The position numbers and the translations under genes were made by a program. From positions 62,001 to 126,000 of the IMG/VR virus record IMGVR_UViG_3300029258_002750: DNA of 64,000 bases; one strand, written 5' to 3'. This document shows, piece by piece, positions 16,974 to 47,564 of this stretch. The notes beneath the pieces were generated by a model. The model was not told the origin of the DNA and searched no databases. It saw only the letters and a list, made by a program, of their open reading frames with translations. Every line of letters begins with the position of its first letter. The stretch's first letter is position 1.

Positions 16974-17477
16974 GTGGGCCTGAAGGATGTGGCCGAGGAT
17001 CTCGCTGGCTTCCTCGTGGAGGCCGACCCCGACCCGGGGCCGGGTCCGCCTGTACTCACCGAGGAGCAGGTCGACGAGGCCGCAACGGCCGTACTGGACT
17101 ACGTGCTCAGTCGGATGGAGAGCGACGATACGCCCGCCACGCTGGGCGAGGCGCTCGTCATCGGCGCGCGGGCCGTCAGCGTGGACCTCGATCAGGGTGA
17201 CGACCGGATCGCTCAGGCGGCCGTCTCCCGACTCGAGGACATCGCGCGGGCAGCTCGGGTGTCGATCGAGGAACAGGAAGAGCCGATCGAGGAGGCGACC
17301 GCTCCCGAGACGAGCGCGATCATCGACCTGCTCCGCAAGAAGAAGGGCGCGAAGCTGCGCGAGGTCGCCAAGGCAATCGGCAGCGATGTGAGGGCGGCAG
17401 CCAAGGCGCTCAAGAAGCTCCAGGCGCAGGGTCGGCTCGACTACAACCTCAAGACCGGATACTCGGTGGTGCAGTGA
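16974..17477 (+). CDS. Protein with C-terminal winged helix-turn-helix
   Basis: IIDLLRKKKGAKLREVAKAIGSDVRAAAKALKKLQAQGRLDY is a wHTH pattern. Confidence 0.55.
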   Translation: MGLKDVAEDLAGFLVEADPDPGPGPPVLTEEQVDEAATAVLDYVLSRMESDDTPATLGEALVIGARAVSVDLDQGDDRIAQAAVSRLEDIARAARVSIEEQEEPIEEATAPETSAIIDLLRKKKGAKLREVAKAIGSDVRAAAKALKKLQAQGRLDYNLKTGYSVVQ

Positions 17478-18577
17478 GCCTCTACGAGCGGGTGCTAGGC
17501 GAGGCCGCCGCGACGGCGGCAGCTGGTTTCGCCGCTCTCTCCTCCGATGAGAAGCGGGCGCTCGCTCGTGCGTGGGACGCGTGGCGGAACAAGCCATCCT
17601 GGGAGAAGCGTGGCCAGAACGCCTGGTACGACTGTCCGCGTGTGAAGGCGGTGCTAGGGCTCTCGCCGGGCGACAAGGTCCCACGCTTCATCAAGCGGCT
17701 CAAGCGGAAGGATCTGAGCGAGTCGAAGCAGGGGGGCGCGGCAGCGTCCAAGAAGCTCAGTGGGACGTGGGGGCATCCGCGCCGACACGGCAAGAAGGCG
17801 GCCAGCAAGAAGCGCCGTCAGCAAGGCAAGCGGATCGACGAGGGCAAGGCCGCGTCCAGCTCGCAGATCAGCTACGCCCAGCACCTCGCCAAGCAGCAGA
17901 AGCTCAGAAGCCCGACTGCCGACGAGATCGCGGCGATGGACGACGTGACCATCAGCAAGCTGATCGACGGCCTCAAGAAGAAGCGCGGCGAGCCGGTGTT
18001 CTACGGCAACGGCAAGTTCAAGGGCTGGGTCAAGAAGGGTGAGCTGTGGCCCAAGGGCAAGAAGGAGTCGCTCGGCGAGGCCGCCTGGGGCATGTTCACC
18101 GGCGGGGCGGCGCCGCTGGATGTTCCCTACCACGTGGGCGGAGACTGGAAGGAAGGCGCGGCGCAATTGCTCCGTCGGGAGCTTGCGAAGCTCAAGGGGA
18201 TGGAGCGCGCGCGCCTTGCCCTCCTCGCTGACGCGCTAGAACGCCGGGATCTCAAGGCGGCCAAGAGGTTCTACAAGAAGCTGTCGAAGGCCGCCCGGAA
18301 CCGCTACGTCACGGTGGCGGCCCGCGAGAAGCTCTCAGAGTCGCTCGAGGAGTACGGCGGCATCGGCGGCCGGATCGCCGGTGGTCGTCATCCCTACCGC
18401 GTGCCTCCGTCGAACACGATCCCGCCTGCCAACACGATCGTCACCCGCAAGGACATGACGCCCGAGCTGCTGGCGAAGCGGCAGCGCGAGTTGGAACAGC
18501 GGGCCGAGACGCGAGAGCGGATGCGTCAGCTGGCGATCGAAGGCAAGCGCCGACCACTGAAGACTCTCAGTTCGTAG
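17474..18577 (+). CDS. Basic protein with N-terminal MSLYERVLGE motif (putative capsid-targeted protein)
   Basis: GTGA overlap; LSE, IDE, LGE and LEE sites; ends RRPLKTLSS. Confidence 0.6.
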   Translation: MSLYERVLGEAAATAAAGFAALSSDEKRALARAWDAWRNKPSWEKRGQNAWYDCPRVKAVLGLSPGDKVPRFIKRLKRKDLSESKQGGAAASKKLSGTWGHPRRHGKKAASKKRRQQGKRIDEGKAASSSQISYAQHLAKQQKLRSPTADEIAAMDDVTISKLIDGLKKKRGEPVFYGNGKFKGWVKKGELWPKGKKESLGEAAWGMFTGGAAPLDVPYHVGGDWKEGAAQLLRRELAKLKGMERARLALLADALERRDLKAAKRFYKKLSKAARNRYVTVAAREKLSESLEEYGGIGGRIAGGRHPYRVPPSNTIPPANTIVTRKDMTPELLAKRQRELEQRAETRERMRQLAIEGKRRPLKTLSS

Positions 18578-18597
18578 CTCGATTCGTCGCTCGTCCT

Positions 18598-18606
18598 GGG
18601 TAGAAC
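18598..18606 (+). promoter_or_regulatory. GGGTAGAAC -10-like promoter, leaderless start 7 nt downstream
   Basis: TAGAAC-GTGGGTC-ATG(18614), no SD; motif recurs upstream of many genes. Confidence 0.55.
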
Positions 18607-18613
18607 GTGGGTC

Positions 18614-18829
18614 ATGGTCGAGCCTACGTGGTGCCCGGTCTGTCACGAGATCATGGCTGAGGGCGAAGAGTGCCCGCGCTGCGCCGGGAGGCCAATACCG
18701 AGGGAGACTGTTCCACGGCGCTCTCACCGGCACACCAGCGAGTACGTTGCGGGGTGCGCGCTAACCGCTGGCGCCATCGCGCTGGTCTTGGGGTTCGCGC
18801 TCGGTTTCCTCGTGAGGGGCTGCACGTAG
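18614..18829 (+). CDS. Small Zn-ribbon protein with C-terminal transmembrane helix
   Basis: CPVC...CPRC plus hydrophobic C-terminal segment. Confidence 0.5.
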   Translation: MVEPTWCPVCHEIMAEGEECPRCAGRPIPRETVPRRSHRHTSEYVAGCALTAGAIALVLGFALGFLVRGCT

Positions 18830-19012: not shown

Positions 19013-19789
19013 GTGGGTCCACGGGTTCTAGTGGTCGTCGCGGGGAACAAAGGACATGGCAAGGACGTGACGGCGGATGCGCTAGCCGAGCTGCTCCCGG
19101 ACGCGCGGCGGGATGCCTACGCAGCTCCGCTGAAGGTGTGCGTCCACCTGAAGACGGGGATCCCGATGGACGTGCTCAATGGGCCGCAGTCGGTGAAGGA
19201 GGACCCCAAGTTCGGACGTTACGGGCAGACCCCGCGTAAACTCATGCAGGACGAGGGTCAGGAGGCCCGGGAGCGGATCGGCCCGACCGTCTGGATGGAT
19301 CGGCTCGTAGAACGCACACGGGCCGCCCAGGAGCGCTGCACGATCGTCAGTGACGGACGACACCCAAACGAGGAGATCGTTGGTGTACGGGCCGCGCTGG
19401 GCTTCCACGGGCTTGTCCTGGCAGTTCGTGTGGTCCGTCAGAGCGTCCCCGTCGTCCGTGGCCACCCCTCCGAGGACAAGATCGCCGACGCCCCGGACTC
19501 CCTGTTCGACGTGATCGTCCGTAACGATGGAACTCTGGAGGACTTACGGGCGATGGTCCAGCAGGTCGCCGACCTGGCCGTGCTCCGCTCCAAGACGGGC
19601 GGCCGGAAGAAGGCCCCGGAGGGCTGGATCATCCGGTGCCCGAGGGGCGGGCGACGGGCCGAGCCGATCGAACTGGAGCAGACGGCGAGGATCACCGCCG
19701 CGCAGCCGATGATGCCGTGCCCGGGGTGCGGCTACCAGGACGAGCATACCGTCGAGCCGGTCAGCTACGACCTGATCGAGATCGTTTGA
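19013..19789 (+). CDS. Deoxynucleoside monophosphate kinase (phage dNMP kinase)
   Basis: P-loop AGNKGHGKD, AYAAPLK, TPRKLMQ..G, VSDGRHPNE; C-terminal Cys-rich extension. Confidence 0.85.
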   Translation: MGPRVLVVVAGNKGHGKDVTADALAELLPDARRDAYAAPLKVCVHLKTGIPMDVLNGPQSVKEDPKFGRYGQTPRKLMQDEGQEARERIGPTVWMDRLVERTRAAQERCTIVSDGRHPNEEIVGVRAALGFHGLVLAVRVVRQSVPVVRGHPSEDKIADAPDSLFDVIVRNDGTLEDLRAMVQQVADLAVLRSKTGGRKKAPEGWIIRCPRGGRRAEPIELEQTARITAAQPMMPCPGCGYQDEHTVEPVSYDLIEIV

Positions 19790-19915: not shown

Positions 19916-22669
19916 ATGTCGTCACCCGTAAGTGCTGTTGGTGATAAGACTTCTGCCGTACAGCTCAAGCCCTACTTCACCAAGACCGATGATCCCTTCG
20001 AGGGGATCGAGTGGGATCGTCGCCGAGCTGTGATCCAGAACGCGGACGGGACCGTCGTGTTCGAGATGGAGGACGTGGAGGTTCCCGCGAGCTGGAGCCA
20101 GCGCGCGACCGACATTGTCGTCTCGAAGTACTTCCGCAAGGGAGGCGTGCCCAAGACGAAGACCGAGACATCGGTTCGCCAGGTGGTGCACCGGATCGCC
20201 GATGCACTCTCATCGGCCGGGCAGCACCAGGGCTACTTCACACCGGAGACCGGCCGCATCTTCTACCGCGAGCTGGCGCACCTCCTCGTGAACCAGGTCG
20301 GCTGCTTCAACTCGCCGGTCCTGTTCAACGTCGGACTGGCCGAGAGCTACAACATCACCGGCGAGTCAGCTGGCAACTGGGCCTGGGTCGAATCGCTGGG
20401 CGAGGCGGTCCAGACGACCGACGGTTACTCGCGCGCTCAGGCTTCGGCCTGCTTCATCCGCTCAGTCGAGGACGACCTCATGTCAATCGCCGAGGGCATC
20501 AAGACCGAGATGCGCCTCTTCAAATACGGAAGCGGCACTGGAACCAATTTCTCCCGCCTGCGCGCGATCGGGGAACCGCTCTCCAGCGGCGGATCTTCGT
20601 CGGGCGTGATGAGCTTCTTGCGCGCGTACGATACGGCGGCCGGATCGGTCAAATCGGGCGGCGCAACGCGCCGGGCTGCGAAGATGGTAATCCTCGACGC
20701 CGACCACCCGGACGTCGAGCGGTTCATCGACTGGAAGGTGCAAGAGGAGAGGAAGGCGAAGGCGCTCATTGCTGCCGGGTTCTCCGGCGGCATCGACGGC
20801 GAGGCATACAGGACCGTCTCTGGGCAGAACGCGAACAACACGGTGCGGGTAACCGATGGCTTCATGCGCGCGACCGAGAAGGGCGATGAGTGGTCAACAC
20901 GGTTCCGCACGTCGGGCGAGGTTGCCACGAAGCTCGACGCGAAGAAGCTGCTCCGCAAGATCGCGTCGGCCGTCTGGGAGTGCGGCGACCCTGGCATCCA
21001 GTTCCACGACACGATCAACAAGTGGAATCCGACGCCGAACGCTGGGAAGATCAGGGCCTCGAACCCGTGCGGCGAGTTCATGTTCGTCGATGAGTCGGCC
21101 TGCAATCTGGCCAGCCTGAACCTGGTCAAGTTCCTCCATTCCGACGGCACGTTCGACATCGAGAGCTTCCGCCAGGCGTGCAGGGTTTTCATCCTCGCCC
21201 AGGAGATCATCGTCGACTACGCGAGCTACCCGACGAAGAAGATCGCCGAGAACAGCCACCGGCTCCGGCCCCTCGGCCTGGGCTACGCGAACCTCGGCGG
21301 TCTGCTCATGCGGATGGGGCTCCCTTACGACAGCGACGAGGGCCGTGCCGTCTGCTCGGCCATCACCGCGCTGATGAGCGGAACCGCCTGGGAGATGTCG
21401 GCCGAGATCGCGATGCGCGTCGGGCCGTTCACCGGCTTCGCGTTCAACAGGGACTCCATGCTCCGCGTCGGCCAGATGCACAAGGACGCGCTCGACGGCA
21501 TCCCGCAGAGTCCGATCCGTGACGAAGCGACACTCGCCTGGGAGCGCGCGCTTGACCTCGGTGGGCAGCACGGCTTCCGCAATGCGCAGTTGTCCTTGCT
21601 CGCCCCGACCGGGACCGTCTCGTTCCTGATGGACTGCGACACGACGGGGATCGAGCCGACCTACGCGCTGATCGCGCACAAGAAGCTCGCCGGTGGTGGG
21701 ACGATGAAGATCACCAGTGGCGCTGTGATCGAGGCTCTCCATGCGCTCGGCTACGAGCCGGACGCGCAGCGCGAGGTGGCCGAGTACATCGACGACAACG
21801 GGAAGATCGAGGGCGCGCCGCACGTCCGGCCGGAGCACTACCCGGTCTTCTCGTGTGCGACCGGCGAGGGCGCGATCACCCCGAAGGGCCACCTGGGCAT
21901 GATGGCCGCCGCGCAGCCGTTCCTCTGCGGTGGGATCTCCAAGACGTGCAACCTGCCGAAGAATGCGACCGTCGAGCAGATCGAGCAGCTCTACCGCGAC
22001 GCCTGGGAGATGGGGCTCAAGGCCGTGGCCGTGTTCCGTGCGGGCAGCAAGGGCTGCCAGGTGCTCACGTCGGGCCGGAAGAAGCGCCAGCCGGATGAGC
22101 CTGCGGCCGAGCGCGCTCAGGACGAGCAGGTCCGCGCGCGCCGTCGTCGCCACCGGCTACCGAAGCGCCGGACTGGCTTCACCCAGGAGGCAACGATCGG
22201 CGGGCACAAGGTCTACCTGCGGACCGGCGATTACGAGGACGGTTCCCTGGGCGAGATCTTCATCGACATGCACAAGGAGGGCGCGACGCTCCGCTCGCTC
22301 CTCAACACGGTGGCGATTTCCATCTCGTTGGGACTCCAACACGGCGTGCCGCTCGAGGAGTACGTGGACGCCTTTACGTGGACGCGCTTCCTTCCGGCCG
22401 GGCCGGTTGTCGGCCACGACCACGTCAAGACGGCGACCTCGATCATCGACTACATCTTCAAGGTGCTTGCGGTCGAGTACCTCGGCCGACACGACCTCGC
22501 CCACGTGCACCCGCTCAAGAGCAAAGGTGACGGCAGCGTAGAGCCGGTGCCGCCGACGAACGGTGCCTCCCGTGAGGCCCAGATCTGTCCGCGCTGTGGG
22601 GGCCTTACGCAGACGAGCGGAACGTGCAGCGTTTGCGTCTCGTGCGGAGAGACCACAGGCTGCTCCTAA
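19916..22669 (+). CDS. nrdJ: Class II (adenosylcobalamin-dependent) ribonucleotide reductase with C-terminal TSCPD domain and Zn ribbon
   Basis: FNSPV, SACF, GSGTG, RRAAKM, SNPCGE, APTGTVS..DCDTTGIEP, GGISKTCN; C-terminal CPRC...CSVCVSCGETTGCS. Confidence 0.95.
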   Translation: MSSPVSAVGDKTSAVQLKPYFTKTDDPFEGIEWDRRRAVIQNADGTVVFEMEDVEVPASWSQRATDIVVSKYFRKGGVPKTKTETSVRQVVHRIADALSSAGQHQGYFTPETGRIFYRELAHLLVNQVGCFNSPVLFNVGLAESYNITGESAGNWAWVESLGEAVQTTDGYSRAQASACFIRSVEDDLMSIAEGIKTEMRLFKYGSGTGTNFSRLRAIGEPLSSGGSSSGVMSFLRAYDTAAGSVKSGGATRRAAKMVILDADHPDVERFIDWKVQEERKAKALIAAGFSGGIDGEAYRTVSGQNANNTVRVTDGFMRATEKGDEWSTRFRTSGEVATKLDAKKLLRKIASAVWECGDPGIQFHDTINKWNPTPNAGKIRASNPCGEFMFVDESACNLASLNLVKFLHSDGTFDIESFRQACRVFILAQEIIVDYASYPTKKIAENSHRLRPLGLGYANLGGLLMRMGLPYDSDEGRAVCSAITALMSGTAWEMSAEIAMRVGPFTGFAFNRDSMLRVGQMHKDALDGIPQSPIRDEATLAWERALDLGGQHGFRNAQLSLLAPTGTVSFLMDCDTTGIEPTYALIAHKKLAGGGTMKITSGAVIEALHALGYEPDAQREVAEYIDDNGKIEGAPHVRPEHYPVFSCATGEGAITPKGHLGMMAAAQPFLCGGISKTCNLPKNATVEQIEQLYRDAWEMGLKAVAVFRAGSKGCQVLTSGRKKRQPDEPAAERAQDEQVRARRRRHRLPKRRTGFTQEATIGGHKVYLRTGDYEDGSLGEIFIDMHKEGATLRSLLNTVAISISLGLQHGVPLEEYVDAFTWTRFLPAGPVVGHDHVKTATSIIDYIFKVLAVEYLGRHDLAHVHPLKSKGDGSVEPVPPTNGASREAQICPRCGGLTQTSGTCSVCVSCGETTGCS

Positions 22670-30714: not shown

Positions 30715-31665
30715 GTGAGCCTCTTCGATCGCGTGTTGGGCGAGGAAATCGGCGCGGCCGGATCCTGGGATCAGACCAACCCGGTCGGGGTCTCGAAGCA
30801 GTCCCGCAAGGTGATCGGGAACTTCCCGCTTCCGCTCAACAGGAGGCGGAAGAAGGGAGAGCGGCTCGACCCGAACCTGTACACCGAGCAGCAGCCTGCC
30901 CCGATCTCAGGCTGGGTTGTGCTGCGCTACCCAGCTGGCACGAAGCACGCGGGCAAGGCCGATGTCGTAATCGGCAAGGGCGGCGATCGGAAGCGGGCGA
31001 AGAAGATCGCCGACTCACTGCGGTGGATCTACGGCAAGCGGGTGAAGACAGAGGGCAGGTACGATCCCAGTCGGTGCACGAACACGGTCATGCGGGCATT
31101 CGGTGTCTGCGCCAACGACGCCATGAACACCGGGCATATTCTCAGCGGCTTGCGCCAGGCGGGGTGGAAGTATCAGCCGGTTCGACTACCGTGGGACAAG
31201 AAGACAAAACTGCGCGACTTCGTGAATTCGCATCCGAAGGGGCGCTACGTGATCGGTGTTCGTCGACACGCGATGGCCCTTATCGACGGGAAACTGATCG
31301 ACACGACGGAGAAAGGCCCGGACGGTAGGCACGTCAAGGACGTCTACGTCGTATGGCGAGCAGGCGAACCGACGCCCACGTTCGAGGACGAGCAGCCGTC
31401 GTTCAAGGTGCTGAGGAAGGGCCGCAAGCCGCTCGACCCCGAGGAACGGCAGCTCTGCTTCGATCGGAAGGCCGTCTGGCACAACCGGCTCAAGCGGAAC
31501 GAGAAGACTGGCGAGATCGAGCACCTGCCGACGCCAGCCGTCTGGAAGTCCGAAGTGGACGGCAAGACCTGGTACGTGACGAACACGCACCGGGCCTACA
31601 ACGTGACGCCGACGCTGAAGGCTACGATCAAACGGTTTCACGACTTCATCAGGGGCACGGCGTGA
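30715..31665 (+). CDS. MSLFDRVLGE protein with papain-like (C39-like) Cys-His-Asp domain
   Basis: SRCTNTVMRAF...KGRYVIGVRRHAMALIDGKLIDT; GTGA overlap start. Confidence 0.5.
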   Translation: MSLFDRVLGEEIGAAGSWDQTNPVGVSKQSRKVIGNFPLPLNRRRKKGERLDPNLYTEQQPAPISGWVVLRYPAGTKHAGKADVVIGKGGDRKRAKKIADSLRWIYGKRVKTEGRYDPSRCTNTVMRAFGVCANDAMNTGHILSGLRQAGWKYQPVRLPWDKKTKLRDFVNSHPKGRYVIGVRRHAMALIDGKLIDTTEKGPDGRHVKDVYVVWRAGEPTPTFEDEQPSFKVLRKGRKPLDPEERQLCFDRKAVWHNRLKRNEKTGEIEHLPTPAVWKSEVDGKTWYVTNTHRAYNVTPTLKATIKRFHDFIRGTA

Positions 31666-31724
31666 GCCTCTACGATCGGGTGCTCGCGGAGGAGGACCGG
31701 GGGGCTGTTCGCACGCTCTACGCG
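31662..31724 (+). pseudogene. Original 5' end (MSLYDRVLAEEDRGAVRTLY) of the HAD gene, split off by HNH insertion
   Basis: EDRG..VRTLY is duplicated at the start of the 32297 ORF on the other side of the HNH gene. Confidence 0.6.
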
Positions 31725-32216
31725 TCAGGGAACGTGCGTCCAGGTGCGCCCCTGCTTGATGTGGGCGATGGCGCTCTTGCTGACGCCGAGCGATGTGGCG
31801 ATGGCTTGCAGCGATTCTCCGGTCTTGAGGCGTTGTCGGATGCCCGGGATGTCGGCCTCGACGAGTTGCGCCTTCCTGTTCTTCGACCCTCTCCTGTCGT
31901 CAAACCGACCCTTTCGCGAGCAGTCTTCCATGTTCCTCTTCTGGGTGCCGAGGAACAGGTGGTCAGGATTCACGCAGGCCGGTGTGTCGCAGGAGTGGCA
32001 GACATTCATTCCCGGGGGGATGCTCCCTTTTTCCAGCAGGTAGGCTATCCGATGGGCACGTTGTTCTTTTCCCCATCGGATGTGCCCGTACCCGTCGTGG
32101 TTCACCGCCCCTGTCCAGAGCCAGCATCCGCTCTTCGTGCGACGAACTCTGCTCCAGAGTCGTGTCTCGATTGGGGTGTGGTGCGAGAAGCGCGGGGTAT
32201 GATGGTTGGTGGCCAT
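31725..32216 (-). mobile_element. Free-standing HNH homing endonuclease with C-terminal HTH
   Basis: CWLWTG..GYG..AHRIAY..VCHSCDTPACVNPDHL..GTQKRNMED; AAGGAGG RBS; inserted antisense within a + strand operon. Confidence 0.88.
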
Positions 32217-32247
32217 CGTGCCTCCTTCACAGGCTCGGCGGTCTGCG

Positions 32248-32273: not shown

Positions 32274-32296
32274 TCGCCTTCTGCAAGGATAGTAGC

Positions 32297-33037
32297 GTGA
32301 GACGGCGGGGGTTGAAGGTGCTCCTGTCGGAGGACAGGGGGAGTGACCTAAAGGTAAGAACACTATATATTTATGACTTCGACGACACGCTGGTCTACTC
32401 GCCGCCGGTCGAGCACATCCGTGACATCACGAAGGCGAGCAGCATCGTCGGCAAGCCGATCAAGGCCAAGCCTCAGGTGCGCGTGGCCTACCAGCGAGCG
32501 AAGCGGGATCACCTGGGCAAGGTCATCGTGATGACCGGCCGGATCAACACGCCCGAGCTGCGGAAGGCCGTGAAGAACGCGCTCGATCAGGCGGGCTACC
32601 CGGGCCACAAGCACGGCCGCGACCTCTTCCTCAAGGACCCGAAGGTGCGCCGCACGGCCGAGTGGAAGAAGAAGATGCTGCGCGGCCTCATGCGCCGGTT
32701 TCCGAACGTGACCTCGGTGCATATGTGGGACGACCGGGGCGAGCACGTCGAGCAGTTCCGCAAGCAGATCAAGGATCTCGGCCGCCAGGACCACGTCGTG
32801 CACGTCGCCGAGAGCCTCTACGACCGGATCATCGAGAGCTACCCGAACCGGCCTCGCGGACAAGCTCGCGACACGCCGGTACTATCCAAGGGGGAGAAAC
32901 CGCCGCCCGAGGCGCCAGCCGAAGAGCCTGAACAGCCGATGGACAAGCCGTTACCTGGGAACGTGAGTCCGAGAGCGTTCATGAGAGGAGCAGGTACAAG
33001 GGCTCAACGCATGAGAGGACCAAGGCCGCCTCGATGA
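32297..33037 (+). CDS. HAD-superfamily hydrolase (phage HAD, Swiss-Army-Knife-like)
   Basis: YDFDDTL, VMTGR, LFLK and MWDDR motifs; internal SLYDRIIE copy at 32813. Confidence 0.8.
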   Translation: MRRRGLKVLLSEDRGSDLKVRTLYIYDFDDTLVYSPPVEHIRDITKASSIVGKPIKAKPQVRVAYQRAKRDHLGKVIVMTGRINTPELRKAVKNALDQAGYPGHKHGRDLFLKDPKVRRTAEWKKKMLRGLMRRFPNVTSVHMWDDRGEHVEQFRKQIKDLGRQDHVVHVAESLYDRIIESYPNRPRGQARDTPVLSKGEKPPPEAPAEEPEQPMDKPLPGNVSPRAFMRGAGTRAQRMRGPRPPR

Positions 33038-35462: not shown

Positions 35463-35471
35463 ACCCTAGTT

Positions 35472-36593: not shown

Positions 36594-36773
36594 GTTGCCC
36601 TCCCTAGCACGTGTAGAGGACGAACGACGGCTCGGTGTAGACGCGTTCGACCGGGTCGTTCGAGGGGTCGTAGCCCTCGATGAAGGTGCCCGCCTTGACC
36701 TGTTCTCGGAGCAGCTCGCGCGCCTGATCTTCGTTCTCGGCCAGGCAGGCGAATCCGTCCCATTCGTAGAGGT

Positions 36774-37938: not shown

Positions 37939-38277
37939 TCACGCCGCCTCCTCTTCGTCGAGCAGCGAGCCCATCCGGGTGATGACGTCGATCTCCTTCG
38001 TGTATCCCTTGTCGCGCTTCTTGCCCTTCAGCTCCCGCGCGTGCTTCTTCGCCGAGAACCTGCTGTGGCGGATCTCGACCTTGATCTGGCCCCTCGTGCC
38101 GTACTTGCCCCAGCGCCGGACGACCTTCCACTGGCCGTCGTGCCTGAAGATCGCGACCTCCCAGTACTTGTCGCTTTTCCCGCTCTTGTTCGAGGCATTG
38201 GGTCCGAGGTACTCGAGGTAGCGGTGGTAGACCGGCTCGGGCCAGGTGTCGTAGGGACTGATGTCGGTGATCTTCAC
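37939..38277 (-). CDS. WGR domain protein with C-terminal tag
   Basis: SDKYWEV...VVRRWGKYGTRGQ...KKRDKGY; DVITRMGSLL. Confidence 0.8.
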   Translation of the reverse strand: MKITDISPYDTWPEPVYHRYLEYLGPNASNKSGKSDKYWEVAIFRHDGQWKVVRRWGKYGTRGQIKVEIRHSRFSAKKHARELKGKKRDKGYTKEIDVITRMGSLLDEEEAA

Positions 38278-38870
38278 TTGTCGTCCTCCCCGGTCCACAG
38301 CGGCCGACCGTCGCGGTCCACCTGGTTGTGCGGGCGGCGGCAGCGCGCCTCGCCCTGCCAGACGTTGTTGGCCGACTGCTTACGGACACCGGCCCAGACC
38401 CGGCCCGAGTAGCGCCGGATCCGTCGGCGGGTGTGTCCGTGTTGCGGCTTGCCCTTGATGCTCACGGTCCCCTCCTCTCCTAGTCCAGCAGGTCCACGTT
38501 GAAGCAGAGCTTGTCGATGTCGATCCAGTAGCCCGACCCGTCCACCTTGCAGCGCGTGCCATCGCGGGTGACGGCCACGACGTACTCCCAGCCGGTGAAC
38601 CGGGCGCGGCCCCGCCCCGGCATCTCGTTCTCGCAGCCCTTGCGCGGGAAGGCCGAGACCAGGAACGTGGCGCGGCGATCGGCCTGCCGGTGCAGGACCA
38701 TCGCGCGCAGACGCGGCCCGGACACGTAGTAGTTGCTGGACCGCTTGTAGTGCTGGACCTTGCCGTCGAACACGACGCGCACGCCGCCCTCGGCGGTAGC
38801 GCGGGAATAGCCTGCCTCGGTGATCGTCGGGAGTTGAATCGCTTGGGTCTGAGCCACGGTTGTCTTGCCT

Positions 38871-38905
38871 CCACCTCTCTCAACAACCATGCTCTCCGTT
38901 CTCAC
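38871..38905 (-). promoter_or_regulatory. Conserved leader GTGAGAAC-N8/9-GTTGT(T/G)G(A/G)GAGAG, copy 1 of 3
   Basis: Same element at 45531-45568 and 57911-57947, each directly upstream of an RBS and minus-strand gene. Confidence 0.55.
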
Positions 38906-38978
38906 ACGATTTCGTAGACGGGTGTCGCTAAAGGACTTCCGGCGCCGGTCTCTGGTGGGCGGTCTCACACCCAAGGTT

Positions 38979-39530
38979 CTACCCGGGGTCGGCCAGTTCT
39001 CCGAGATGCTCGATGGCGCTCAGGAGATCGATCTCCCCCGGCTCCTCGCGACCGTCGCACAGGCGATCTGCGCAGTTGTTCCAGCGCGTGAAATCCGAGT
39101 TGTCGCGCTGATGTCCCGCGTGGTGGATGAATGACAGGAAGAGCCCGCGATCCTCGGCGATGGCCATCGCGTGTTCTATCTTGCCGCGCACCAGCTGATC
39201 TTTGATCTTCCAGTTGCCTGTCATCCAGGCCGCGATCCCGAGGTAGTCGGAGACGATGGTGACCTCGGTGTTCTCCGGTGCGCGAGCGAGTCCGAGGCAC
39301 AAGGCATCCAGCTCTGCACCAACGTTCCTCGTGCTCGTAGGCTTGTTGAAGCCCGCGTACTTCCTCGCGTAGGCGCGGGTGACAACCACGGCCCCGAAGC
39401 CGCCCTTCGAGCTGCCATCGGTGAAGACGTACGTCTTGTCGGCCATGCAGCGTCGGTCCTCTAGGAGAGAGACCCACTTGGCCTGGTGCGGAACGCGGGT
39501 GGTCTTGAGATTCGTGGAGTAGACGGTCAT
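38979..39530 (-). CDS. rnhA: Ribonuclease HI with C-terminal tag
   Basis: FTDGS, AEL.A, VSDY, HHAGH...WNNCAD; ends SAIEHLGELADPG. Confidence 0.85.
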   Translation of the reverse strand: MTVYSTNLKTTRVPHQAKWVSLLEDRRCMADKTYVFTDGSSKGGFGAVVVTRAYARKYAGFNKPTSTRNVGAELDALCLGLARAPENTEVTIVSDYLGIAAWMTGNWKIKDQLVRGKIEHAMAIAEDRGLFLSFIHHAGHQRDNSDFTRWNNCADRLCDGREEPGEIDLLSAIEHLGELADPG

Positions 39531-39559
39531 GTGGCCGTTCTACCCCAAGGTGGCGACGG

Positions 39560-39973
39560 CTAGGGTTGTCGGGGCTGCTCGGGGTCGCCTATTTCAGCGA
39601 GCAGCCCCGCCAGAGCCGCTTCGGAATCGGCCTCCTCGGCGGCGCCGGTATCTCCCCGAGATGCAAGCAAGCCCGACCAGTTTCCCGATCGGGCTGCTTC
39701 TAGGATCCGAACGGCCCTCGGATCGGGGCTCGGACCTCGCGTCGCCTTCACGAGCGCGACGACCCTGTCCATCGCCCAGGGATGCCGGGCCAGCTGGCCC
39801 TCGATCACGCGCCGTTCGTGGCTTGATACGGCACCGGCGGCATAGCGACAGAGTCCGTACACATCGACGCCCGACTCCAGGGCGAAGTCGGGCGCGGTTC
39901 GGGCCGCCGTGGCCTCGGTCAGCAGATCAGCAAACAACGTCTGGCCGGGGCGCTTGGAATTGACGGGGGGCAT
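39560..39973 (-). CDS. Possible anti-sigma-factor N-terminal-like protein
   Basis: LCRYAAGAVSSHERRVIEGQLARHPWAMDRV resembles degenerate zf-HC2 helices. Confidence 0.3.
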   Translation of the reverse strand: MPPVNSKRPGQTLFADLLTEATAARTAPDFALESGVDVYGLCRYAAGAVSSHERRVIEGQLARHPWAMDRVVALVKATRGPSPDPRAVRILEAARSGNWSGLLASRGDTGAAEEADSEAALAGLLAEIGDPEQPRQP

Positions 39974-41167
39974 GGGGTCCTCTTTGGTGGGGGTGGTACT
40001 CCTTAGACCTTCGAGGGTGTCTCCCCTGTCAGTTCGACTGCACGTAGAGCAGCCACAACTCGTTTGTCCAGCGGCGCATCTTGAGCACGGCCGGGTGTTG
40101 CGTCGCCGGGCACGCCCGGTACATGGCCCAGGTCTCGGCCGCGATCTCGGGCGTCACCGGCTCGTGCGTCGCCGGGACCAGCTCGTGCCAGATCCAGGCG
40201 AGGAGCATCACGTGCTCCTCCTTGACGCTCGGCAGATCCCAGACCACGACGCTCACCTCACCTCCTAGCACTCTTCTCGGTACCTCGGTGCTCCCCAGCC
40301 CGGCCCGCGTCTGATCGCGGTGAAGTACGGCCAGTCGGGCGCGAGTTCGGCGAGGATCTGCTTGTCGATCTCGCGTCGCAGGTCAGTGCTGGCGGCCTCG
40401 ATCAGATCGCACTCGACCGACATCTACTGCCTCGTGTAGTCGTCGTGGTGCCCGTACGGCGATCCGTCTTCGCCAGCGAACACCCTCTCTCCGGTTTCCC
40501 GATTGACCAGGTAGCGTGTGCCAGGGCCGCCCTGGACACCAGGCACGCCGGTGCCTGGAACACTGGCCTCGCTCCCCCTCGGCTTGGCTGTGGCGATCGG
40601 CAGCTCGCCTTTGAGGTGCCGCACTCGGCCGCAGCCCTCCTCGTCCTCGCAGTCCGGTGTCGGGCCGTGCAGGTCGGGCACGCTGCCGCAGGTTCCGCAC
40701 GGCGCGCCGCTCGCGACCATCTCACTGTCAGCTGGGAGGGGCGCGGCCGGTGCGGCCGGAGGGGGTACCATGCCCGCCTGCTGCGCCTGGTACATGGCCG
40801 GAGAGACCATTGGAGCTGCGGGCGGTCCCTCGACCTCCTTACGCCAGCGAACCGAGAACACGATCTCCGCGTCGTCGGGGATGTCCTCGACCTTCTCTCG
40901 AGCGATCTTCTTCAGGTCGGTCGGCCCGATGACGCTCTCTGCGTTGCCTACGACGGCGCAGAGCTTGATGTCGCGCGGGTCGATCTCGGTCTCCTCGGGC
41001 AGCACGTCCTTGAGAAGATCGGCCAGCTCATCGCGGTTGAAGGTGATCAAGTGCTCCTCGACCGTCACCACCTTGCGCTTGCTCTCGTGCTTCATGTTGG
41101 GCATGGCTCCTACTTCCTTCTTCTCCTTCTACCTCAGATGGCCGACACAAGAGGTAGAACATCTTTC

Positions 41168-41443
41168 GTGAGAGATCCCGAGCGGATTCCGAGGATGCTG
41201 CGGAAAGTGTATCTCATCTGGAAGCGGTCCCCAGACTTACGACTGCTCCAGATGCTCTCGTGGATCGCCGAGAAGCCGCTGCCAGAGCAGGGCAGTTTGC
41301 CCAGGCGGTCGATCGCCGCGCGGTTCGTGGATGATGACCGACTGGAGCAGCAGCTCGATCGCGCTCTCCAAGATCGCTGTGTGATCGATGCGCTCGGTGA
41401 CTCGCTGGGGTTCGAGGATGCGGTGCTCCGAGATGACGGCTAG
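41168..41443 (+). CDS. DUF1040/YihD-like phage protein with tag
   Basis: MRDPERIPRML...WKRSPDLRLLQ; VIDALGDSL; GGTAGAAC-N7-GTG start. Confidence 0.6.
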   Translation: MRDPERIPRMLRKVYLIWKRSPDLRLLQMLSWIAEKPLPEQGSLPRRSIAARFVDDDRLEQQLDRALQDRCVIDALGDSLGFEDAVLRDDG

Positions 41444-42428
41444 CGTGGTCTGAGCGTCAGTGCGACGTTGGGGATCTCTCGCGAGAACGTGTCCACCTTC
41501 GGCGCTCCGACATCCAGCTGGCCTGTCGATGGCGGCGGCGGGCTGCTCTCCGGCTTCTTCTTGAGCGTCTTCAGCGCACGTCGCTTCAGCTTCACGCCAC
41601 ACCTCGCGCCGGGATGAAGAAGTCCTCGTCGCAGGCGAGCGGGTTGAACCGCAGATCGAGTTTGCCTCCGCCCCGCCTCTGCTCCTGCTCCTTCTTCCAC
41701 TTCGCCCATTCCGGGTTCTCGGCGACCGGCATGTCGCAGAGTTTCTTCATGGCCGCGCCCGCGACCTCGCCCTGGCGCCGCGCCTCTTTGGTTGCTGCCT
41801 CCATCTCGTCCCACGCATCGACCCACGCCTTCAGCTCCGGGTCGGCCAGTGCGCCGAGCCGATCGTGGACGGTCGGTTCGCGGAGCGGGCTTGGCGTCCG
41901 TCGCGGCGGCGGTGCGCAGACCTGCTTCTTCTTGAGGTCGCGCTTCACGCGACGAAGGAAATCATCGACCTCGGACATCTTGTCGTAGCCGAGACCGCGC
42001 AGCCGCTTGATGATCCGCTCTCGAATGCTGCTCATAGGTACTTCCTCTTGATCTTCTCTGCCGCCCGGTCGCGCGCCGTCTTGCCTGTGATCTTTACCTC
42101 CTTGGGCTTGGGCGGGTCTACGACGGCCGCGAGTCGGTCGACGGCGTGTGCGTTGAGGAATTCGAGGATCTCGGTCGCGAGCTTCCTAAACGCTCTGCCG
42201 TAGGTCTTTCCGTAACCACGGATGCGGAGTACGTGAGCGAGCCACTCAAGGCAGTCCTTGTCGGCCGAGTGAAGGTTCAAGAAAGCGCCCTCGTCGTCGC
42301 CCTCGAAGCTCTCGGCGATGCGATGCCAGATCTGCTGCTCGGGTTCGGTGCGACGCGAATGCGGCTTGCCGATGGTGCGGCGGATCCACATCATCACCTT
42401 CGACTCGATGTAGATCTTCGAGCTGACT

Positions 42429-42737
42429 CTACGTCTTCGGCCAGGCTGGGCTGATTTCATCCGCCATATCGTCGCGCGGGTCGTTGTGCTTGTAGGTAAC
42501 ACCGCCGACTGGCGCCGGGAACGAATCGCAGCGCGGGCAGTACGCGGCGTGCCAGGGCTCGTGGTAGTTCGGGCACCGGCGGCGGAACCGCTCGTAGTCT
42601 CGAACCGGATCGACCACTTGGGGCGAGACATTTGACGAGTCGCCGATCACGTCATAGACGCCCATGCCCAGGGTATGGAGCCCACCGGCCATCGTGGCCT
42701 CGGCGAGTGTCTTGAGCGGCCTGCGTCGGAGGTTCAT
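42429..42737 (-). CDS. Small protein with N-terminal MNLRRRPLKTLAE motif
   Basis: GGGTAGAAT-N6-ATG start; C-x-x-C motif. Confidence 0.55.
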   Translation of the reverse strand: MNLRRRPLKTLAEATMAGGLHTLGMGVYDVIGDSSNVSPQVVDPVRDYERFRRRCPNYHEPWHAAYCPRCDSFPAPVGGVTYKHNDPRDDMADEISPAWPKT

Positions 42738-43451
42738 GTCGAGATTCTACCCAAGCGGTTCGTGAGATCATCGCCGGTTCCGGCGTCGGGAGAGTTTCGC
42801 TAGCCAGTTGCGTCGTCGGCGTCGATGCTTCTCGCGTGGCGAGAGCGGCTGACGCTGCGGCATGTTCCTGAAGATGTCACCGAGCCTTGTGACCGCGTCG
42901 TCCGGCTCGGGATCGACGGGCTCGATGCACGTGCTTGCGCTGCTTGTGCTGCTTGTGAGGATCGTACCGCTGGCGGCGGTCCACTCGAGATCCTCTGCCT
43001 CGTGGTAGGTAATCACGCCACTCGGCATCGCCTCTGGGTTTTCGATGTAGAGCATCGCCTCCGCTGCCTTCTACCTCCAGGTCTAGCACTACCGTGCTGG
43101 CAGTGCTCGCGCTCTCCACCATCGTCCACGTGATCAGGCCGTTCGGGCAGTTCGTGTGGTGCCGCTGGCAGCGATCGGGGCCGTGGTCCATGCAGCCTTC
43201 GCAGCGGTGCAGGTCGGCGAGCGCATCGACGGCCGAGTAGGGCTTCACCGCGCGGGGAGTGCGGTAGACGAGGCGGCCCGTGGCCAGCTTGACGCCGTAT
43301 CCCCATTCGTCGTCTTTATCGGTGACGACTTCGCCTCGGATCCACACGACGCGCTCTAGGGCTTCTGTCTCGGAGATGCCGAGCGCCCAGGCGGTGTGCA
43401 TGACCGCTTCTAGGGACTCGCGGGTGACGAGGACGCGGTCGCCGCGCTTGA

Positions 43452-43742
43452 TCACGGAGAGCCGATGACCTCGATCTCGTCCGGCGGGATCACGAGGTTG
43501 AGCGCGCGCGGCCCATCCCAGCTGACGGTGACGTGGTGCGTGTCGTCGTGCGGCCACTTGATGCACTGGAGTACGGTGCCCTCGGCGCCGGGCTCCATCG
43601 GGCACGGGTCCTCGCCCATCTTGACCAGGCGGATGCGGGTTCCGACGGGCAGGTTCACGCGGCCTCCTCGTGCTTCATTTACCTTGTAGACCGCCTGCCG
43701 GATCACGGGAGTCCCAGCTTCTTGTTCCGGCAGCTGTCGCAC
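43452..43742 (-). CDS. DUF4314 family protein
   Basis: GTRIRLVKMGEDPCP..PGAEGTV....HVTVSWDG..ALNLVIPPDEIEV. Confidence 0.7.
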   Translation of the reverse strand: MRQLPEQEAGTPVIRQAVYKVNEARGGRVNLPVGTRIRLVKMGEDPCPMEPGAEGTVLQCIKWPHDDTHHVTVSWDGPRALNLVIPPDEIEVIGSP

Positions 43743-45530
43743 CGGGCCTCGTTACCACACCAGTGCACCAGCCCCTCGATCGGTTGCTCGCAGTCGGCGC
43801 AGACCGGCCTCTCGTCTTCCATCTCGTTCAGCACGTCCTTCAGGTCGCGGCGGCCGAGCACGTCGCCCAGCCGGGAGACCGAGTCGAGCGGCTCGACGGC
43901 TTGCGGCGGCGCCCATGCGAACTCCAACCCGTCATCGAGGATAAGCCGGAGCGTCGTGGTCCCGTCGGGGTTCGTGATGACTCGATCGACCGTCGCCTTC
44001 TTGCGAACGCCCTGGCCCTCTTGGATCGCCTTGTCGAACGACGAGAGCAGGTGGTCCTTCGGCAGGTCGTGCGAGCCGTGTGTGCCGCCGGGTCCGTAGG
44101 AGCAACCGGGCTGGGGGACGAAGTCGACTCGATCGCCGGGTTGCCAAGATGGTCCGATGATGGGGATGTCCATGACGTCTCCTAGTCCTGTTCTACCTCG
44201 ACGACCGGACACAGGGCGCCGAGAGCATCGACGGGGTTCGGGTTCGGCCAGATCTCGATCCACCGGGTCCTGGCGACCGGCTTCCCCGGGATGACCTGCT
44301 GTACCAGGATCGACGCGCGCCAGCCTCGCCGGATGAACTCAGCTGGCACCTTGGCTTTGAGCGCGGCCCGCGCCTTCTTCTCCGACCGGAAGGTGTGCTT
44401 GAACATGGGCCTGGTGGCGACCGTCCACATGCCCTTGCGCAGATGGAAGCCGAACTGGCGCCTGTGCATTCCGTAGCGGAACTGGACGACGTCGAGCACC
44501 TCGTGACGCTTCTTCCCGCGCCGATCGATCTCGGTCTTGTCCAGGCGCACGATGTAGGAGCGGCCGTCGTCCATCAGGGCAGCTTCGCCTTCCTTGCCAG
44601 GGCGATGATCGAGGAGAGGTTGAACCACTCCTCCTCGCCGGTGTTGTCGTTGCGGAGCAGGAAGCACCTCTCCCCGGAGTCGGGACCCTCGCCGTGGGCG
44701 TTGTCGAGCTTGGTGCCGCGCACCTTGACCACGCGCACGCCCTGGCAGTCGGGCTCGTGCATCTCGTCGTTGCACTCACTGGTTAGGGCGCACAGCCGGG
44801 CGTGCATGTCGCTCCAGCGCTGGCGCCGGTCCTCCTCGCGCCTCTGCATCTCGGCCGCGAACTCGGCGTTCGCGCGGACCCGCTCGTCGATCAGGGCGTT
44901 GATGGCCTTTCCCCGGCTGGGGAACACGCCCAGCTCGGTCTTCCGCTCGCAGTCCCAGGCGGTCGCCTCGTAGGCGCGGCTGGAGACGTCGCGGCGCTTG
45001 CTCACGCCGCCCAGGTAGTTCTGACCGTCGGGCCGGGTGACCCCCTGGTCGCGGGCCGTCTTGGTGTTGGCCGCCCAGACGCGCAGGCCCCACCACTTGC
45101 GCTCGGTCTCGGTCAGTGCTCGGATCTCGTCGGCCGTTCGACTCTGGGTCACTGTGCTCACTCTGCGCTCGCTTTCTAGCTTCCGACGAACACCGCGCCC
45201 TCGCGCGGCTTGAAGTAGACGATGTTGGTCCGGTTGTTCCGCTCGACGAACACGTGGTCGCCGGGGCTGACGCCCACGCTCCAGTCGCTCCACTCTCCCT
45301 CGGGATCCTGCGCGATCAGCGACAGCAGCTTGAGCATGTGCTTGACCTTGCGGCGGGCCTTGCTCAGGCCGGACTCGGTGGACGTGTCGAGCTTGGTGTG
45401 CGTTCCGAGGCACCCGCAGCAGCACCCGACCCGGCCGTTGTAGACCTGGGTCACGGTCCGCAGGTCCAGGGTCTTCAGGAAAGCCTCGACTCCCTTGGTG
45501 CTTTCGATCGCGTAGCTCATTGCGTTCTCC

Positions 45531-45568
45531 TTTCCGTCTCTCCCCACAACCACGGTTCGCGTTCTCAC
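45531..45568 (-). promoter_or_regulatory. Conserved leader element, copy 2 of 3
   Basis: gtgagaac-gcgaaccgt-ggttgtggggagagacggaaagga upstream of ATG 45520. Confidence 0.55.
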
Positions 45569-45836
45569 AGGGGTTCTTGATGGAATCGTGCAACCCACTC
45601 GGTCGGCTGTCGTTATGACGGCCTTTTCCCTCGTGGATGCGCATCTCCGGCGGCGGCACGCCCAGGCGCACACACGGCCGCGCTACGGGCCTCGGCCGCT
45701 CGGACGGCTCAGAGGTCGAGGAGAGGGGCGATCGTCGCGTCACAGGCCGCCCCGACGCTCTGGGGCGCCAAGGACGGTGCTGCCTGGCTAGGCTCTACTT
45801 GGTAGACTCGTCTGAGGTTACGCCAGGAGGCGTCGC

Positions 45837-46631
45837 GTGAGTCTGTACGACCGGCTGATGGAACAGCCCGAGCACGGCGGGGGAGGCGGCGGTGCTCAGG
45901 GTCGGTTCCGGCCAGCGCCGGGCGGCGCGCTCCAGATCACCGACCGCTCCCGGCAGGGTGTGCGGAACAAGATGAAGGGCGGCAAGTTCGTCGGCCGCAA
46001 CAAGCGCTACCCGGTCTCCAAGAAGCGCGGCAAGGCGGCGGCCCTCGGCTCGCTCTCCCAGGCGATGCAGCGTGGGGCCGGGGTCAAGAAGGTCGCGAGC
46101 GCGGTCCGCAAGGCGTTCCCGGAGGTGTGCCCGACTGTCCTGTCCGGTTGTCCGGGGAGACGGAACCACGGAGCTGGCGGTGCGCCCGTGTCCGGCCGCG
46201 AGGGGCCGAGTGAGCACGGCGCGAAGTCGAACTGGCCCTTCTACCACTCGCGGAAGAAGCCGAAGTGGGACGTGGACTGGACAGCCCTCGGCCACGAGAA
46301 GAAGTCGTCCGGGCTGAAGCGTCAGCGCAGTCACCCGAAGCGGATGGCGTTCAAGAAGACGAAGGGCTACTCGAAGGCGCAGCACCACGACCTCAAGAAG
46401 CAGGCGAAGGCGGCGGCAGAGAAGGAAGCCCAGCTGAAGAAGGCCGCGAAGGCGGCGAAGAAGGGCAAGGCCGGGAAGGCCGCGAAAGCTGCCGCAAAGG
46501 CCGAGAAGGCGCACAAGAAGCTCCGGCGCGCGCTCAAGCGCTACGAGCGACGGAAGAAGGGCGCCGAGCGTCCTTACCGTACCAAGGCGCAGGCCGCGCA
46601 CGGCAAGGGCACGAGCCACCAGACGATCTAG
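45837..46631 (+). CDS. Very basic Lys/Ala-rich (histone H1-like) protein with MSLYDRLME N-terminus
   Basis: AGGAGG RBS; KKAAKAAKK repeats; GGTAGACT upstream. Confidence 0.65.
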   Translation: MSLYDRLMEQPEHGGGGGGAQGRFRPAPGGALQITDRSRQGVRNKMKGGKFVGRNKRYPVSKKRGKAAALGSLSQAMQRGAGVKKVASAVRKAFPEVCPTVLSGCPGRRNHGAGGAPVSGREGPSEHGAKSNWPFYHSRKKPKWDVDWTALGHEKKSSGLKRQRSHPKRMAFKKTKGYSKAQHHDLKKQAKAAAEKEAQLKKAAKAAKKGKAGKAAKAAAKAEKAHKKLRRALKRYERRKKGAERPYRTKAQAAHGKGTSHQTI

Positions 46632-46640
46632 GAGCGTCGC

Positions 46641-47564
46641 GTGAGCCTCTACGAGCGGGTGGTCCTGCTGACCGAAGATGCGATGCCGGAGAATGCGGTC
46701 GACATCTTCCGCTCGCGCGTCCCGGGTTCGCTGAAGAAGCACTACGGCATTGAGATCCGGCCGATCGACCCGAACAAGGTTGCGCTGTCGAAGGACCGTA
46801 CGCTGGCGACGCTCTTCCTGAAGGGGAAGGACGGCCGCCCGTACTCGCTGTCGGTTCGCAGCAAGGGCTCCCACTGGACGGTCACGCTCAAGAGCAAGGG
46901 CCAGACGCTTCTCCAGGGCGATGGACCGAAGGCATTCACCGCGCTCTGGTCGATGAAGGAACCGAAGAAGGCGCACGCGCTCAAGCAGCTCACCGCGCCG
47001 CAGCCCAAGCTCAAGCAGGATGACGATGAGCCGGTCGTCGGGATCTACAAGGGCAAGAAGTACCGGGTGACCGGCTTCAAGCACGGCGGCAATGTCGTCG
47101 AGTTGGCGTGGTTCAGCGACCCGACCAAGAGCTTCAAGGTGGCCACGAAGAAGGTCAAGATCGCCGACCTCCACGGTCCGGCCGTACAGAAGCTCATGCC
47201 CAAGCCGCCGCCCGGTCAGGTCGGTTACTACCGCTTCTCCACGACGCTCGTGAAGGGCTCACCGCTCAAGGACCGGGCCGTGGACGTCGTCAAGGCCGAA
47301 GGTCCCGAGGGCAAGAACATCGGTGGTGCGAAGCGGACGCAGCGTACCGGCGGCTGGCGCGACCGGATCCTCCAGAAGTTCACCCAGCTCTCTGGGGTCA
47401 AGACCCAGCTGTTCGGCGACAAAAAGGACAAGCTCCAGCGATGGCCGACGATGGCCGACTGGGAAGCGATCAAGCAGAAGATCGAGGCCGCGACGGGCGT
47501 GAAGAAGGCGTACTTCATGGTCCCGAAGAAGTGGCACCAGACGGCGCTGATCGTCGAGGTCTAG
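46641..47564 (+). CDS. Basic protein with MSLYERVVLLTE N-terminus
   Basis: First 21 nt identical to the 17474 ORF start; GGAG RBS. Confidence 0.65.
   Translation: MSLYERVVLLTEDAMPENAVDIFRSRVPGSLKKHYGIEIRPIDPNKVALSKDRTLATLFLKGKDGRPYSLSVRSKGSHWTVTLKSKGQTLLQGDGPKAFTALWSMKEPKKAHALKQLTAPQPKLKQDDDEPVVGIYKGKKYRVTGFKHGGNVVELAWFSDPTKSFKVATKKVKIADLHGPAVQKLMPKPPPGQVGYYRFSTTLVKGSPLKDRAVDVVKAEGPEGKNIGGAKRTQRTGGWRDRILQKFTQLSGVKTQLFGDKKDKLQRWPTMADWEAIKQKIEAATGVKKAYFMVPKKWHQTALIVEV

Follow-up and report, generated by a model that had tools for sequence, protein, structure and literature searches.

Why should several otherwise unrelated genes of a single phage begin with the same ten or so amino acids? The question is raised by a stretch of 64,000 nucleotides, called the window throughout, which comprises bases 62001-126000 of virus record IMGVR_UViG_3300029258_002750, a complete record of 275,101 bp with direct terminal repeats and a GC content of about 65%. 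Genes scattered along the + strand of this window start with close variants of one N-terminal peptide of about 9-12 residues (consensus M-S-L-[Y/F]-[D/E]-R-[V/I/L]-hydrophobic-x-E), here called the tag. The answer favoured here, with a probability of roughly 70%, is that the tag is a capsid targeting sequence (CTS) belonging to a deep-branching jumbo phage of the T4 superfamily, as a sequence-only reading of the window had proposed.

A leader common to dissimilar proteins

Translation of the window gives VSLYERVLGE (17474), VSLFDRVLGE (30715), VSLYDRVLAE (31662), VSLYDRLME (45837) and VSLYERVVLLTE (46641) at starts, as well as an internal copy, AE-SLYDRIIE, whose Ser codon lies at 32813. All six copies listed by the sequence-only reading were thus borne out, and the back-translated core AGYCTNTWYGANMG occurs six times in the window, always on the + strand, against 0.05 expected from 100 shuffles. 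That reading had placed the set within 30 kb and had advised a scan of the remaining genome; the scan found further copies at genome positions 148804, 150585, 186053 and 208921, and the set is in fact genome-wide. In a six-frame scan of all 275,101 bp, the pattern x-SL[YFW][DE][RK] had 10 matches, 8 of them falling exactly on the start codon of a + strand open reading frame (ORF), and a looser scan of start codons added VSFYDRIVE at genome 186053. Together these make eight tagged genes that are intact, plus a stub and an internal copy; every one is on the + strand (which holds 64% of the genome's genes), and they are spread over about 130 kb, with a plausible ribosome-binding site upstream of every intact tagged gene.

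Beyond the leader the proteins are unrelated, as had been supposed: an all-vs-all blastp of the tagged proteins minus their first 14 residues returned nothing at E<0.1, and a short N-terminal leader in eight start-located copies is what these otherwise dissimilar proteins have in common. Most of them are also very basic, with a pI of at least 9.7 in seven of the eight, compared with a genome median of 5.9 and 18% of all proteins above 9.5. The Lys/Ala-rich, histone H1-like tail attributed earlier to the 45837 product is indeed legible in its sequence and, together with the pI values, suggests a cargo that may associate with DNA.

The tag itself is conserved in a position-specific manner. Among 18 copies compiled from this genome and its relatives, position 4 is always Y or F and position 7 is V, I or L in 17; position 8 of the tag is hydrophobic. 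Outside this compilation, one orthologue has L at position 4 and one gene of a relative has R. A hydrophobic-x-Glu sequence ends at residues 9-12 in five of the eight tagged proteins (background 8.8%) and is reached by residue 32 in all eight (background 39%), and it lies at 8-12 in all of the relatives' tagged genes examined. In the AlphaFold2 model of the 46641 protein, residues 1-9 have a pLDDT below 50 and the first helix of the fold begins at residue 19; the tag is modelled there as a low-confidence extension outside the predicted fold.

T4-type head genes in the same genome

The same genome encodes a Gp23-type major capsid protein (PF07068, E 1e-55; genome 194762), a gp20-type portal (Portal_T4, PF07230, E 1e-52; genome 187810) and a gp21-type prohead protease (Peptidase_S77, PF03420; phrog_207, head maturation protease), so that a gp21-family protease occurs in one genome with T4-type core, shell and portal genes. 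The head module, at genome 186-197 kb, holds, in sequence, one of the tagged genes (184 aa), the portal, a 277-aa protein, a 416-aa protein, the protease and the capsid protein, the very acidic, scaffold-like 416-aa protein being encoded between portal and protease. The capsid protein is at most 25-31% identical to those of cultured T4-like phages and therefore points to a deep branch of the T4 superfamily, to which this uncultivated jumbo phage appears to belong.

Comparison with T4 and other packaging leaders

The leaders read from the T4 genome are MKTYQEFIAE/A for IPII and IPIII and MKTFKEFTSTTTPVSTITE/A for IPI (MKTFKEF...ITE/A). Ten N-terminal residues are enough for packaging in T4 (PMC9026906, PMC8442874, PMC12373910), and the genetics of IPIII assign residues 4 and 7 to targeting and residues 8 and 10 to processing (PMC9026906). 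The T4 internal proteins are described as 'highly basic' (PMC8442874) and have nothing in common but the leader (PMC9026906, PMC8442874, PMC12373910).

The tag resembles the T4 CTS of IPI, IPII, IPIII and Alt, as far as this is related in the papers citing Mullaney & Black 1996 (PMC9026906, PMC5694885), in being an N-terminal leader (10-19 residues in T4) on unrelated basic proteins, with an aromatic residue at 4, hydrophobic residues at 7 and 8 and a hydrophobic-x-Glu end. The targeting determinants, aromatic 4 and hydrophobic 7, are therefore found at matching positions, and a site of the gp21 type closes the leader some 10-20 residues in. In both cases the distance to the cut site varies (19 residues in T4 IPI and 10 in IPII and IPIII; here 9-12, 16, 17 and 32), and gp21-type protease, gp23 capsid and gp20 portal accompany the leader in one genome. 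The two systems differ in that at least eight tagged genes are found here over about 130 kb, enzymes included (kinase and phosphatase, and NUDIX in relatives), in that in-frame internal copies occur here, and in that the tag is known here from sequence alone.

Other phages offer partial parallels. In the T-even ip loci, as represented in the papers citing Repoila et al. 1994 (PMC2839356, PMC12373910), unrelated ip genes are recognised by their leader only and are exchanged as cassettes, and the relatives of the present phage likewise gain or lose whole tagged genes exactly at tag boundaries; the T-even shuffling elements, however, include upstream promoter-like sequences, whereas the repeat here is mainly tag-coding DNA plus the stop/start overlap. 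In phiKZ-like giants such as SPN3US and 201phi2-1, ejection and inner-body proteins have N-terminal propeptides that a gp21-related protease also removes by cleavage after Glu and to which a role in directing proteins into the prohead is ascribed (PMC5694885); most of these, however, exceed 100 residues, and they have no short consensus in common, while the present tag is short and T4-like. In P1, an N-terminal segment of DarB of no more than 30 residues is all that a foreign protein needs to be taken into the capsid (PMC9024508), although the Dar proteins share no consensus and undergo no processing of the gp21 type.

How far the capsid-targeting reading carries

If the tag acts as a CTS, the leader would bind the scaffolding core of the prohead during assembly, by which the tagged proteins would be built into the head; the gp21-type protease would then cleave after hydrophobic-x-Glu and release mature, mostly very basic proteins, which would stay with the DNA in the head and enter the host together with it. 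This account, of which packaging into the head and injection had already been suggested by the sequence-only reading, is supported by the head genes, the matched positions, the unrelated basic cargo and the amino-acid-level conservation in relatives described below. It also draws on the location of the tag outside the modelled fold of the 46641 protein, on tagged genes placed in or next to head and tail modules, and on the N-terminus of the capsid protein, which likewise has L-x-E at residue 10. The T4 CTS principle thus appears to be present in a far-diverged lineage.

Several points weigh against it. The leaders show no homology to those of T4, MKT[Y/F][Q/K]EF standing against MSL[Y/F][D/E]R[V/I/L], with only Met1, the aromatic residue at 4 and the hydrophobic/Glu pattern in common. 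The proteins encoded at genome 148804, 150585 and 208921 lack a Glu at 9-12, their first hydrophobic-x-Glu ending at 32, 16 and 17, respectively; one tagged protein is acidic (pI 6.0); and some of the cargo, namely the zeta/AAA_33 kinase and the HAD phosphatase, could equally be cytoplasmic. The T4 late promoter TATAAATA, searched for in the genome, is absent, leaving no cue to co-expression with the head genes. A complex predicted between the tag (residues 1-40 of the 46641 protein) and two scaffold-like proteins scored 0.00, which is evidence neither way. Finally, the phage is uncultivated, and packaging, cleavage and injection are inferences from sequence.

The alternative that survives best, although we consider it unlikely, is that the leader is a docking peptide for some other partner or destination, such as a virion compartment, a phage chaperone or a replication compartment, and not for the prohead core. 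It draws on that complex prediction, in which no receptor was identified, on the enzymes among the cargo, which could act in the cytoplasm, and on the portal, whose tag-like N-terminus (MALRDRAVKAL) means that the partner might also bind the portal. The correspondence with the T4 CTS positions, the trailing hydrophobic-x-Glu, the gp21-type protease and the basic cargo nevertheless favour the head as destination, as does the location of tagged genes within or beside head and tail modules.

A second alternative, which we regard as improbable, holds that the leader is a propeptide removed by the protease, keeping proteins inactive or unstable without any role in targeting. The hydrophobic-x-Glu after the motif suits a site of the gp21 type, and several of the cargo enzymes might need such restraint. 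A cleavage site alone, however, takes about three residues, and it would leave unaccounted for the conserved S-L-Y/F-D/E-R upstream of it, which matches the targeting positions 4 and 7 of T4 and not the processing positions; moreover, the prohead protease works inside proheads, so its substrates must reach that place regardless.

Conservation of the peptide and not of its coding sequence

Conservation could also reside in the nucleic acid, as a translational operator or coupling signal at the start, or as a recombination or homing site. Four of the five GTG starts in the window overlap the upstream stop as GTGA (at 17474 it is the stop of ORF 16974-17477), the genes at 45837 and 46641 have about 12 upstream bases in common, in relatives the ends of insertions and deletions coincide precisely with the motif, and one copy has a homing endonuclease gene about 50 bp further downstream. 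The sequence-only reading had remarked that every start is GTG, which holds within the window and is largely a by-product: 45% of the genome's genes start with GTG, the GTGA stop/start overlap partly accounts for both the GTG start and the AGY serine codon, and some copies elsewhere start with ATG and have no such overlap.

The codons argue for the peptide. Across the 18 compiled copies, Ser is encoded by AGC, AGT, TCC or TCG, Leu by CTC, CTG, CTA or TTG, and Arg by CGG, CGC or CGA, and the Asp/Glu codons vary too, while the residues stay constant; since the Ser, Leu and Arg codons differ and the residues do not, it is the peptide that is conserved and not the RNA, and selection on the tag, judged from these codons, acts at the amino-acid level. 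Wobble positions are free, with switches between AGY and TCN for Ser and between CTN and TTG for Leu, conservation extends with differing codons into the hydrophobic residues and the Glu, and in-frame internal copies are also retained; a role at the RNA or DNA level is accordingly very improbable. Equally improbable is that the tag is a functionless passenger of a 5' gene cassette (ribosome-binding site, start and a few codons) spread by duplication or recombination, since, for all the cassette-like gain and loss at the motif and the tandem duplicated tags in two orthologues, the peptide is kept with synonymous turnover where orthologues are only 34-55% identical, and a neutral leader would decay.

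The tag as a joint between genes

Relatives of the phage carry the tag on further genes. In the syntenic relative G001 (72-92% nucleotide identity) the orthologue of 17474 retains the tag, and an extra tagged gene of 131 aa stands between it and the upstream gene, with 20 nt of tag-coding DNA aligned twice; another extra tagged gene, of 111 aa, precedes the orthologue of 30715. Four consecutive tagged genes with overlapping stops and starts are found in relative L161. Besides the 111- and 131-aa families of G001, tagged families in relatives include NUDIX, HAD and 139-aa proteins (L161), a 372-aa protein (L003) and others in L163, L164 and L165. Orthologues of 46641 carry the tag down to 43% identity, two of them twice in tandem (P0003, P0004; L003 10001), while in a pair of still remoter ones the leader is another, likewise with L-x-E at its end. 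The orthologue of the L157 lineage starts MNLTEAIA.FR[L/F]L[A/D]E. In L157 the 46641 family adjoins neck, sheath and tube genes (gp13, sheath and gp19), and in L164 the genes directly upstream of the portal gene are one for a tagged fusion protein and one starting VSLRDRIVE.

In-frame internal tags occur in four lineages: here and in G001 they connect HAD with the 139-aa protein, in L161 a 297-aa domain with NUDIX, in L163 two tagged units, and in L164 a 17474-like protein with HAD. The tag-coding DNA also serves as a joint at which genes are gained, lost and fused. ORFs with two tags are situated at L161 3221, L163 875/1298 and L164 10805, their internal copies preceding a second domain (NUDIX or HAD).

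Other routes to relatives yielded little: a search for related loci with one protein found none, tblastn of the 46641 protein against GenBank phages found none, and megablast with 6 kb of the window retrieved only a ribonucleotide reductase fragment. A DNA-pattern scan of metagenomes gave about 80 loci, one of them related (the contig of G001) and the rest chance matches in high-GC genomes.

Loss and fusion of tags at the HAD phosphatase locus

The sequence-only reading had counted five tagged gene starts in the window, with an HAD phosphatase in the tagged set. Four of the genes are real, and the assignment of the enzyme to HAD_SAK_1 is firm, but the fifth start is the severed 5' end of the HAD gene, whose own N-terminal tag has been cut off in this genome. 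ORF 31662-32300 scores negatively for coding and shows the GC-by-codon-position profile of a shadow frame, and its body runs antisense to a gene (31728-32216 without the stop, - strand) for a homing endonuclease of the HNH_3/His-Me finger type (PF13392 8e-11, PF05551 1e-5, C-terminal helix-turn-helix). On these grounds the ORF is no gene, and only its first 22 codons are genuine, being the old HAD 5' end; the stub MSLYDRVLAEEDRGAVRTLYA resembles the start of the downstream HAD gene, MRRRGLKVLLSEDRGSDLKVRTLYIYDFDD.

Relative L161 lacks window positions 31726-32374 (649 bp), aligns on both flanks, and has an uninterrupted tagged HAD gene starting VSLYDRVLVEEDRSAVRTLYVFDFDD. The L161 allele being free of the endonuclease and aligned on both sides, the inserted cassette must have brought the putative endonuclease together with a substitute 26-codon HAD 5' end, which has its own ribosome-binding site and GTG. 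Because this allele exists, ORF 31662 as a decayed pseudogene and ORF 31662 as part of an intron-split gene were both dropped. In the substitute end, every codon of VRTLY has been exchanged (GTT CGC ACG CTC TAC against GTA AGA ACA CTA TAT) for one that ends in A or T and is seldom used in this genome, the pattern expected if an occupied allele must escape re-cutting. Presence/absence polymorphism between relatives and an altered target in the occupied allele thus coincide, as for a homing element with predicted endonuclease activity. The cassette region is 92% identical to G001, the flanks 72-80%.

The internal copy at 32813, present as reported, is really the start of a formerly separate 139-aa gene, freestanding in L161 (MSLYDRIVE..., P0012). 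There, the HAD domain is separated from the start of the 139-aa gene by sequence encoding a ParB-like C-terminal part and by a NUDIX gene with a tag of its own; in the window and in G001 this region is deleted and HAD is fused in frame to the tag, the former start codon now being GAG. At the junction a degenerate stretch resembling the tag (E-GLHSRVV in L161) meets the true tag. The HAD protein here has lost its N-terminal tag to the homing endonuclease and retains only the fused internal copy.

A further in-frame deletion of 192 nt relative to G001 is located at window 32836/32837, between GATCGTCGAG and GCTCGTCGAG; it takes out a zinc-ribbon-like segment (CxxR...CPRC). The remaining Pro-rich tail (32880-33037) is near-identical to that of G001 despite its low GC3, which suggests a second constraint, e.g. 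signals for the next gene at 33034.

Glu sites flank the internal tag (V-A-E/SLYDRIIE/S), which could allow the prohead protease to split such polyprotein cargo within the head; the fused copy might also rescue the packaging of an HAD enzyme that has lost its own tag. With the Pnk-like kinase, the Pnk-like HAD phosphatase and NUDIX, a kit for RNA or nucleotide repair may be injected to blunt host defences. Taken as a whole, the combination of a tag that bounds modules for the fusion and splitting of cargo, a polyprotein cut in the head, a rescued HAD enzyme and an injected repair kit is a tentative proposal that we think rather doubtful.

Tagged genes, their cargo and surroundings

The features are collected in Table 1. 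The database gene call (P0013) places the start of 30715 15 codons upstream, while its orthologues begin at the motif (MSLLDRVVGE, MSLYDRVVGE and MSLYDRVTE). The papain-like enzyme proposed earlier for this gene keeps weak leads only: atlas leads give C39/IpaJ at 0.62, and a single-sequence model of low confidence (pLDDT 56) gives weak but consistent matches to C39/Josephin-type folds, by which the middle domain is possibly C39/papain-like; against Pfam and PDB sequences the protein has no papain-like match even at E <=10. A fold search with the 46641 model against PDB and BFVD gave weak SH3/Tudor-like and clamp-like matches only, and no function. By contrast, the kinase assignment for genome 208921 is firm.

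Table 1. Tagged genes, tag copies and associated features; positions refer to the window unless preceded by 'genome'.
Feature	Position	Strand	Description
Tag MSLYERVLGE	17474..17503	+	Hydrophobic-x-Glu ends at residue 10; starts gene 17474-18577
Cargo gene 1	17474..18577	+	367 aa, pI 10.4, Lys-rich, no family match, coding score +123
Tag MSLFDRVLGE	30715..30744	+	Starts gene 30715-31665
Cargo gene 2	30715..31665	+	316 aa, pI 10.1; C-terminal domain of ~90 aa widespread in phages
Stub MSLYDRVLAEEDRGAVRTLYA	31662..31727	+	Severed original 5' end of HAD gene; tag plus 12 codons, ~22 codons in total
HNH_3 homing endonuclease (predicted)	31725..32216	-	163 aa plus stop; separates stub from HAD gene
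HAD_SAK_1 phosphatase gene	32297..33037	+	246 aa, pI 10.4; substitute N-terminus MRRRGLKVLLSE
Internal tag SLYDRIIE	32813..32836	+	Preceded by V-A-E; start of 139-aa gene freestanding in L161
Tag MSLYDRLME	45837..45863	+	Starts gene 45837-46631; orthologue VSLYDRVVMME
Cargo gene 3	45837..46631	+	264 aa, pI 11.2; Lys/Ala-rich histone H1-like tail (read from sequence)
Tag MSLYERVVLLTE	46641..46676	+	Starts gene 46641-47564
Cargo gene 4	46641..47564	+	307 aa, pI 10.1; family kept in relatives
Tagged gene	genome 148804	+	138 aa
Tagged gene	genome 150585	+	204 aa
Tagged gene	genome 186053	+	184 aa; head module, directly upstream of portal gene
Tagged gene	genome 208921	+	276 aa; AAA_33/zeta-toxin-type kinase

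The two tagged genes at 45837-47564 form a + strand island amid long stretches of small - strand genes (33474-45547 and 47561-64208), with an upstream region of their own (45548-45836) in addition to the shared bases before their start codons. Directly downstream of the first tagged gene lie genes for a dNMP kinase (phrog_139; 19031-19789) and a class II ribonucleotide reductase-like protein (19916-22669), and a 2086-aa ORF without PHROG match occupies 1313-7573. No tRNA or Rfam family was found in a scan of the window.

The sequence GGGTAGAAC occurs 51 times in the genome (24 on the + and 27 on the - strand) against about 2 expected, and is probably a phage promoter element, because its usual place is 20-60 nt ahead of gene starts; it seems to be missing from head and tail genes. 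Copies of GGTAGAA on the + strand of the window are at 18599, 19860, 24507, 41153 and 53533. The element precedes the operon that holds genome 150585, and a similar GGTAGAC precedes 45837.

Within the head module, the capsid protein has the N-terminus MFTAR[G/R]ML[A/G]E, with L-x-E at residue 10, conserved in L164 (18872), and that of the portal (MPLRDRALKAL in L164, 13066) shares L3, D5, R6 and a hydrophobic residue at 8 with the tag. The ORF of the prohead protease (genome 191916-194747, 943 aa; locus L001) contains an intein whose homing endonuclease is of the LAGLIDADG type (residues 81-365 match Hom_end_hint, Hom_end and LAGLIDADG_3); the 575-aa orthologue of the protease in L164 probably has none, given its length and precomputed Pfam hits to Peptidase_S77 only. 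The ORFs directly upstream of the portal (genome 186607-187826) are also intein-like (VSIAGDTVIHT...).

Implications

If the tag is a CTS, a short peptide pattern would list the proteins carried in the head, and probably injected, by an uncultivated 275-kb phage and its relatives. Candidate anti-defence or takeover factors would then include H1-like DNA binders, a kinase, a phosphatase, NUDIX proteins and a possible cysteine peptidase. Such a tag would offer a second, independent means of packaging foreign proteins in phage heads. The logic of the T4 CTS, with an aromatic residue at 4, a hydrophobic one at 7 and a cut after hydrophobic-x-Glu, would have outlasted a very deep split in the T4 superfamily while its sequence changed wholly, and this shared logic would narrow what the receptor on the scaffolding core must recognise.

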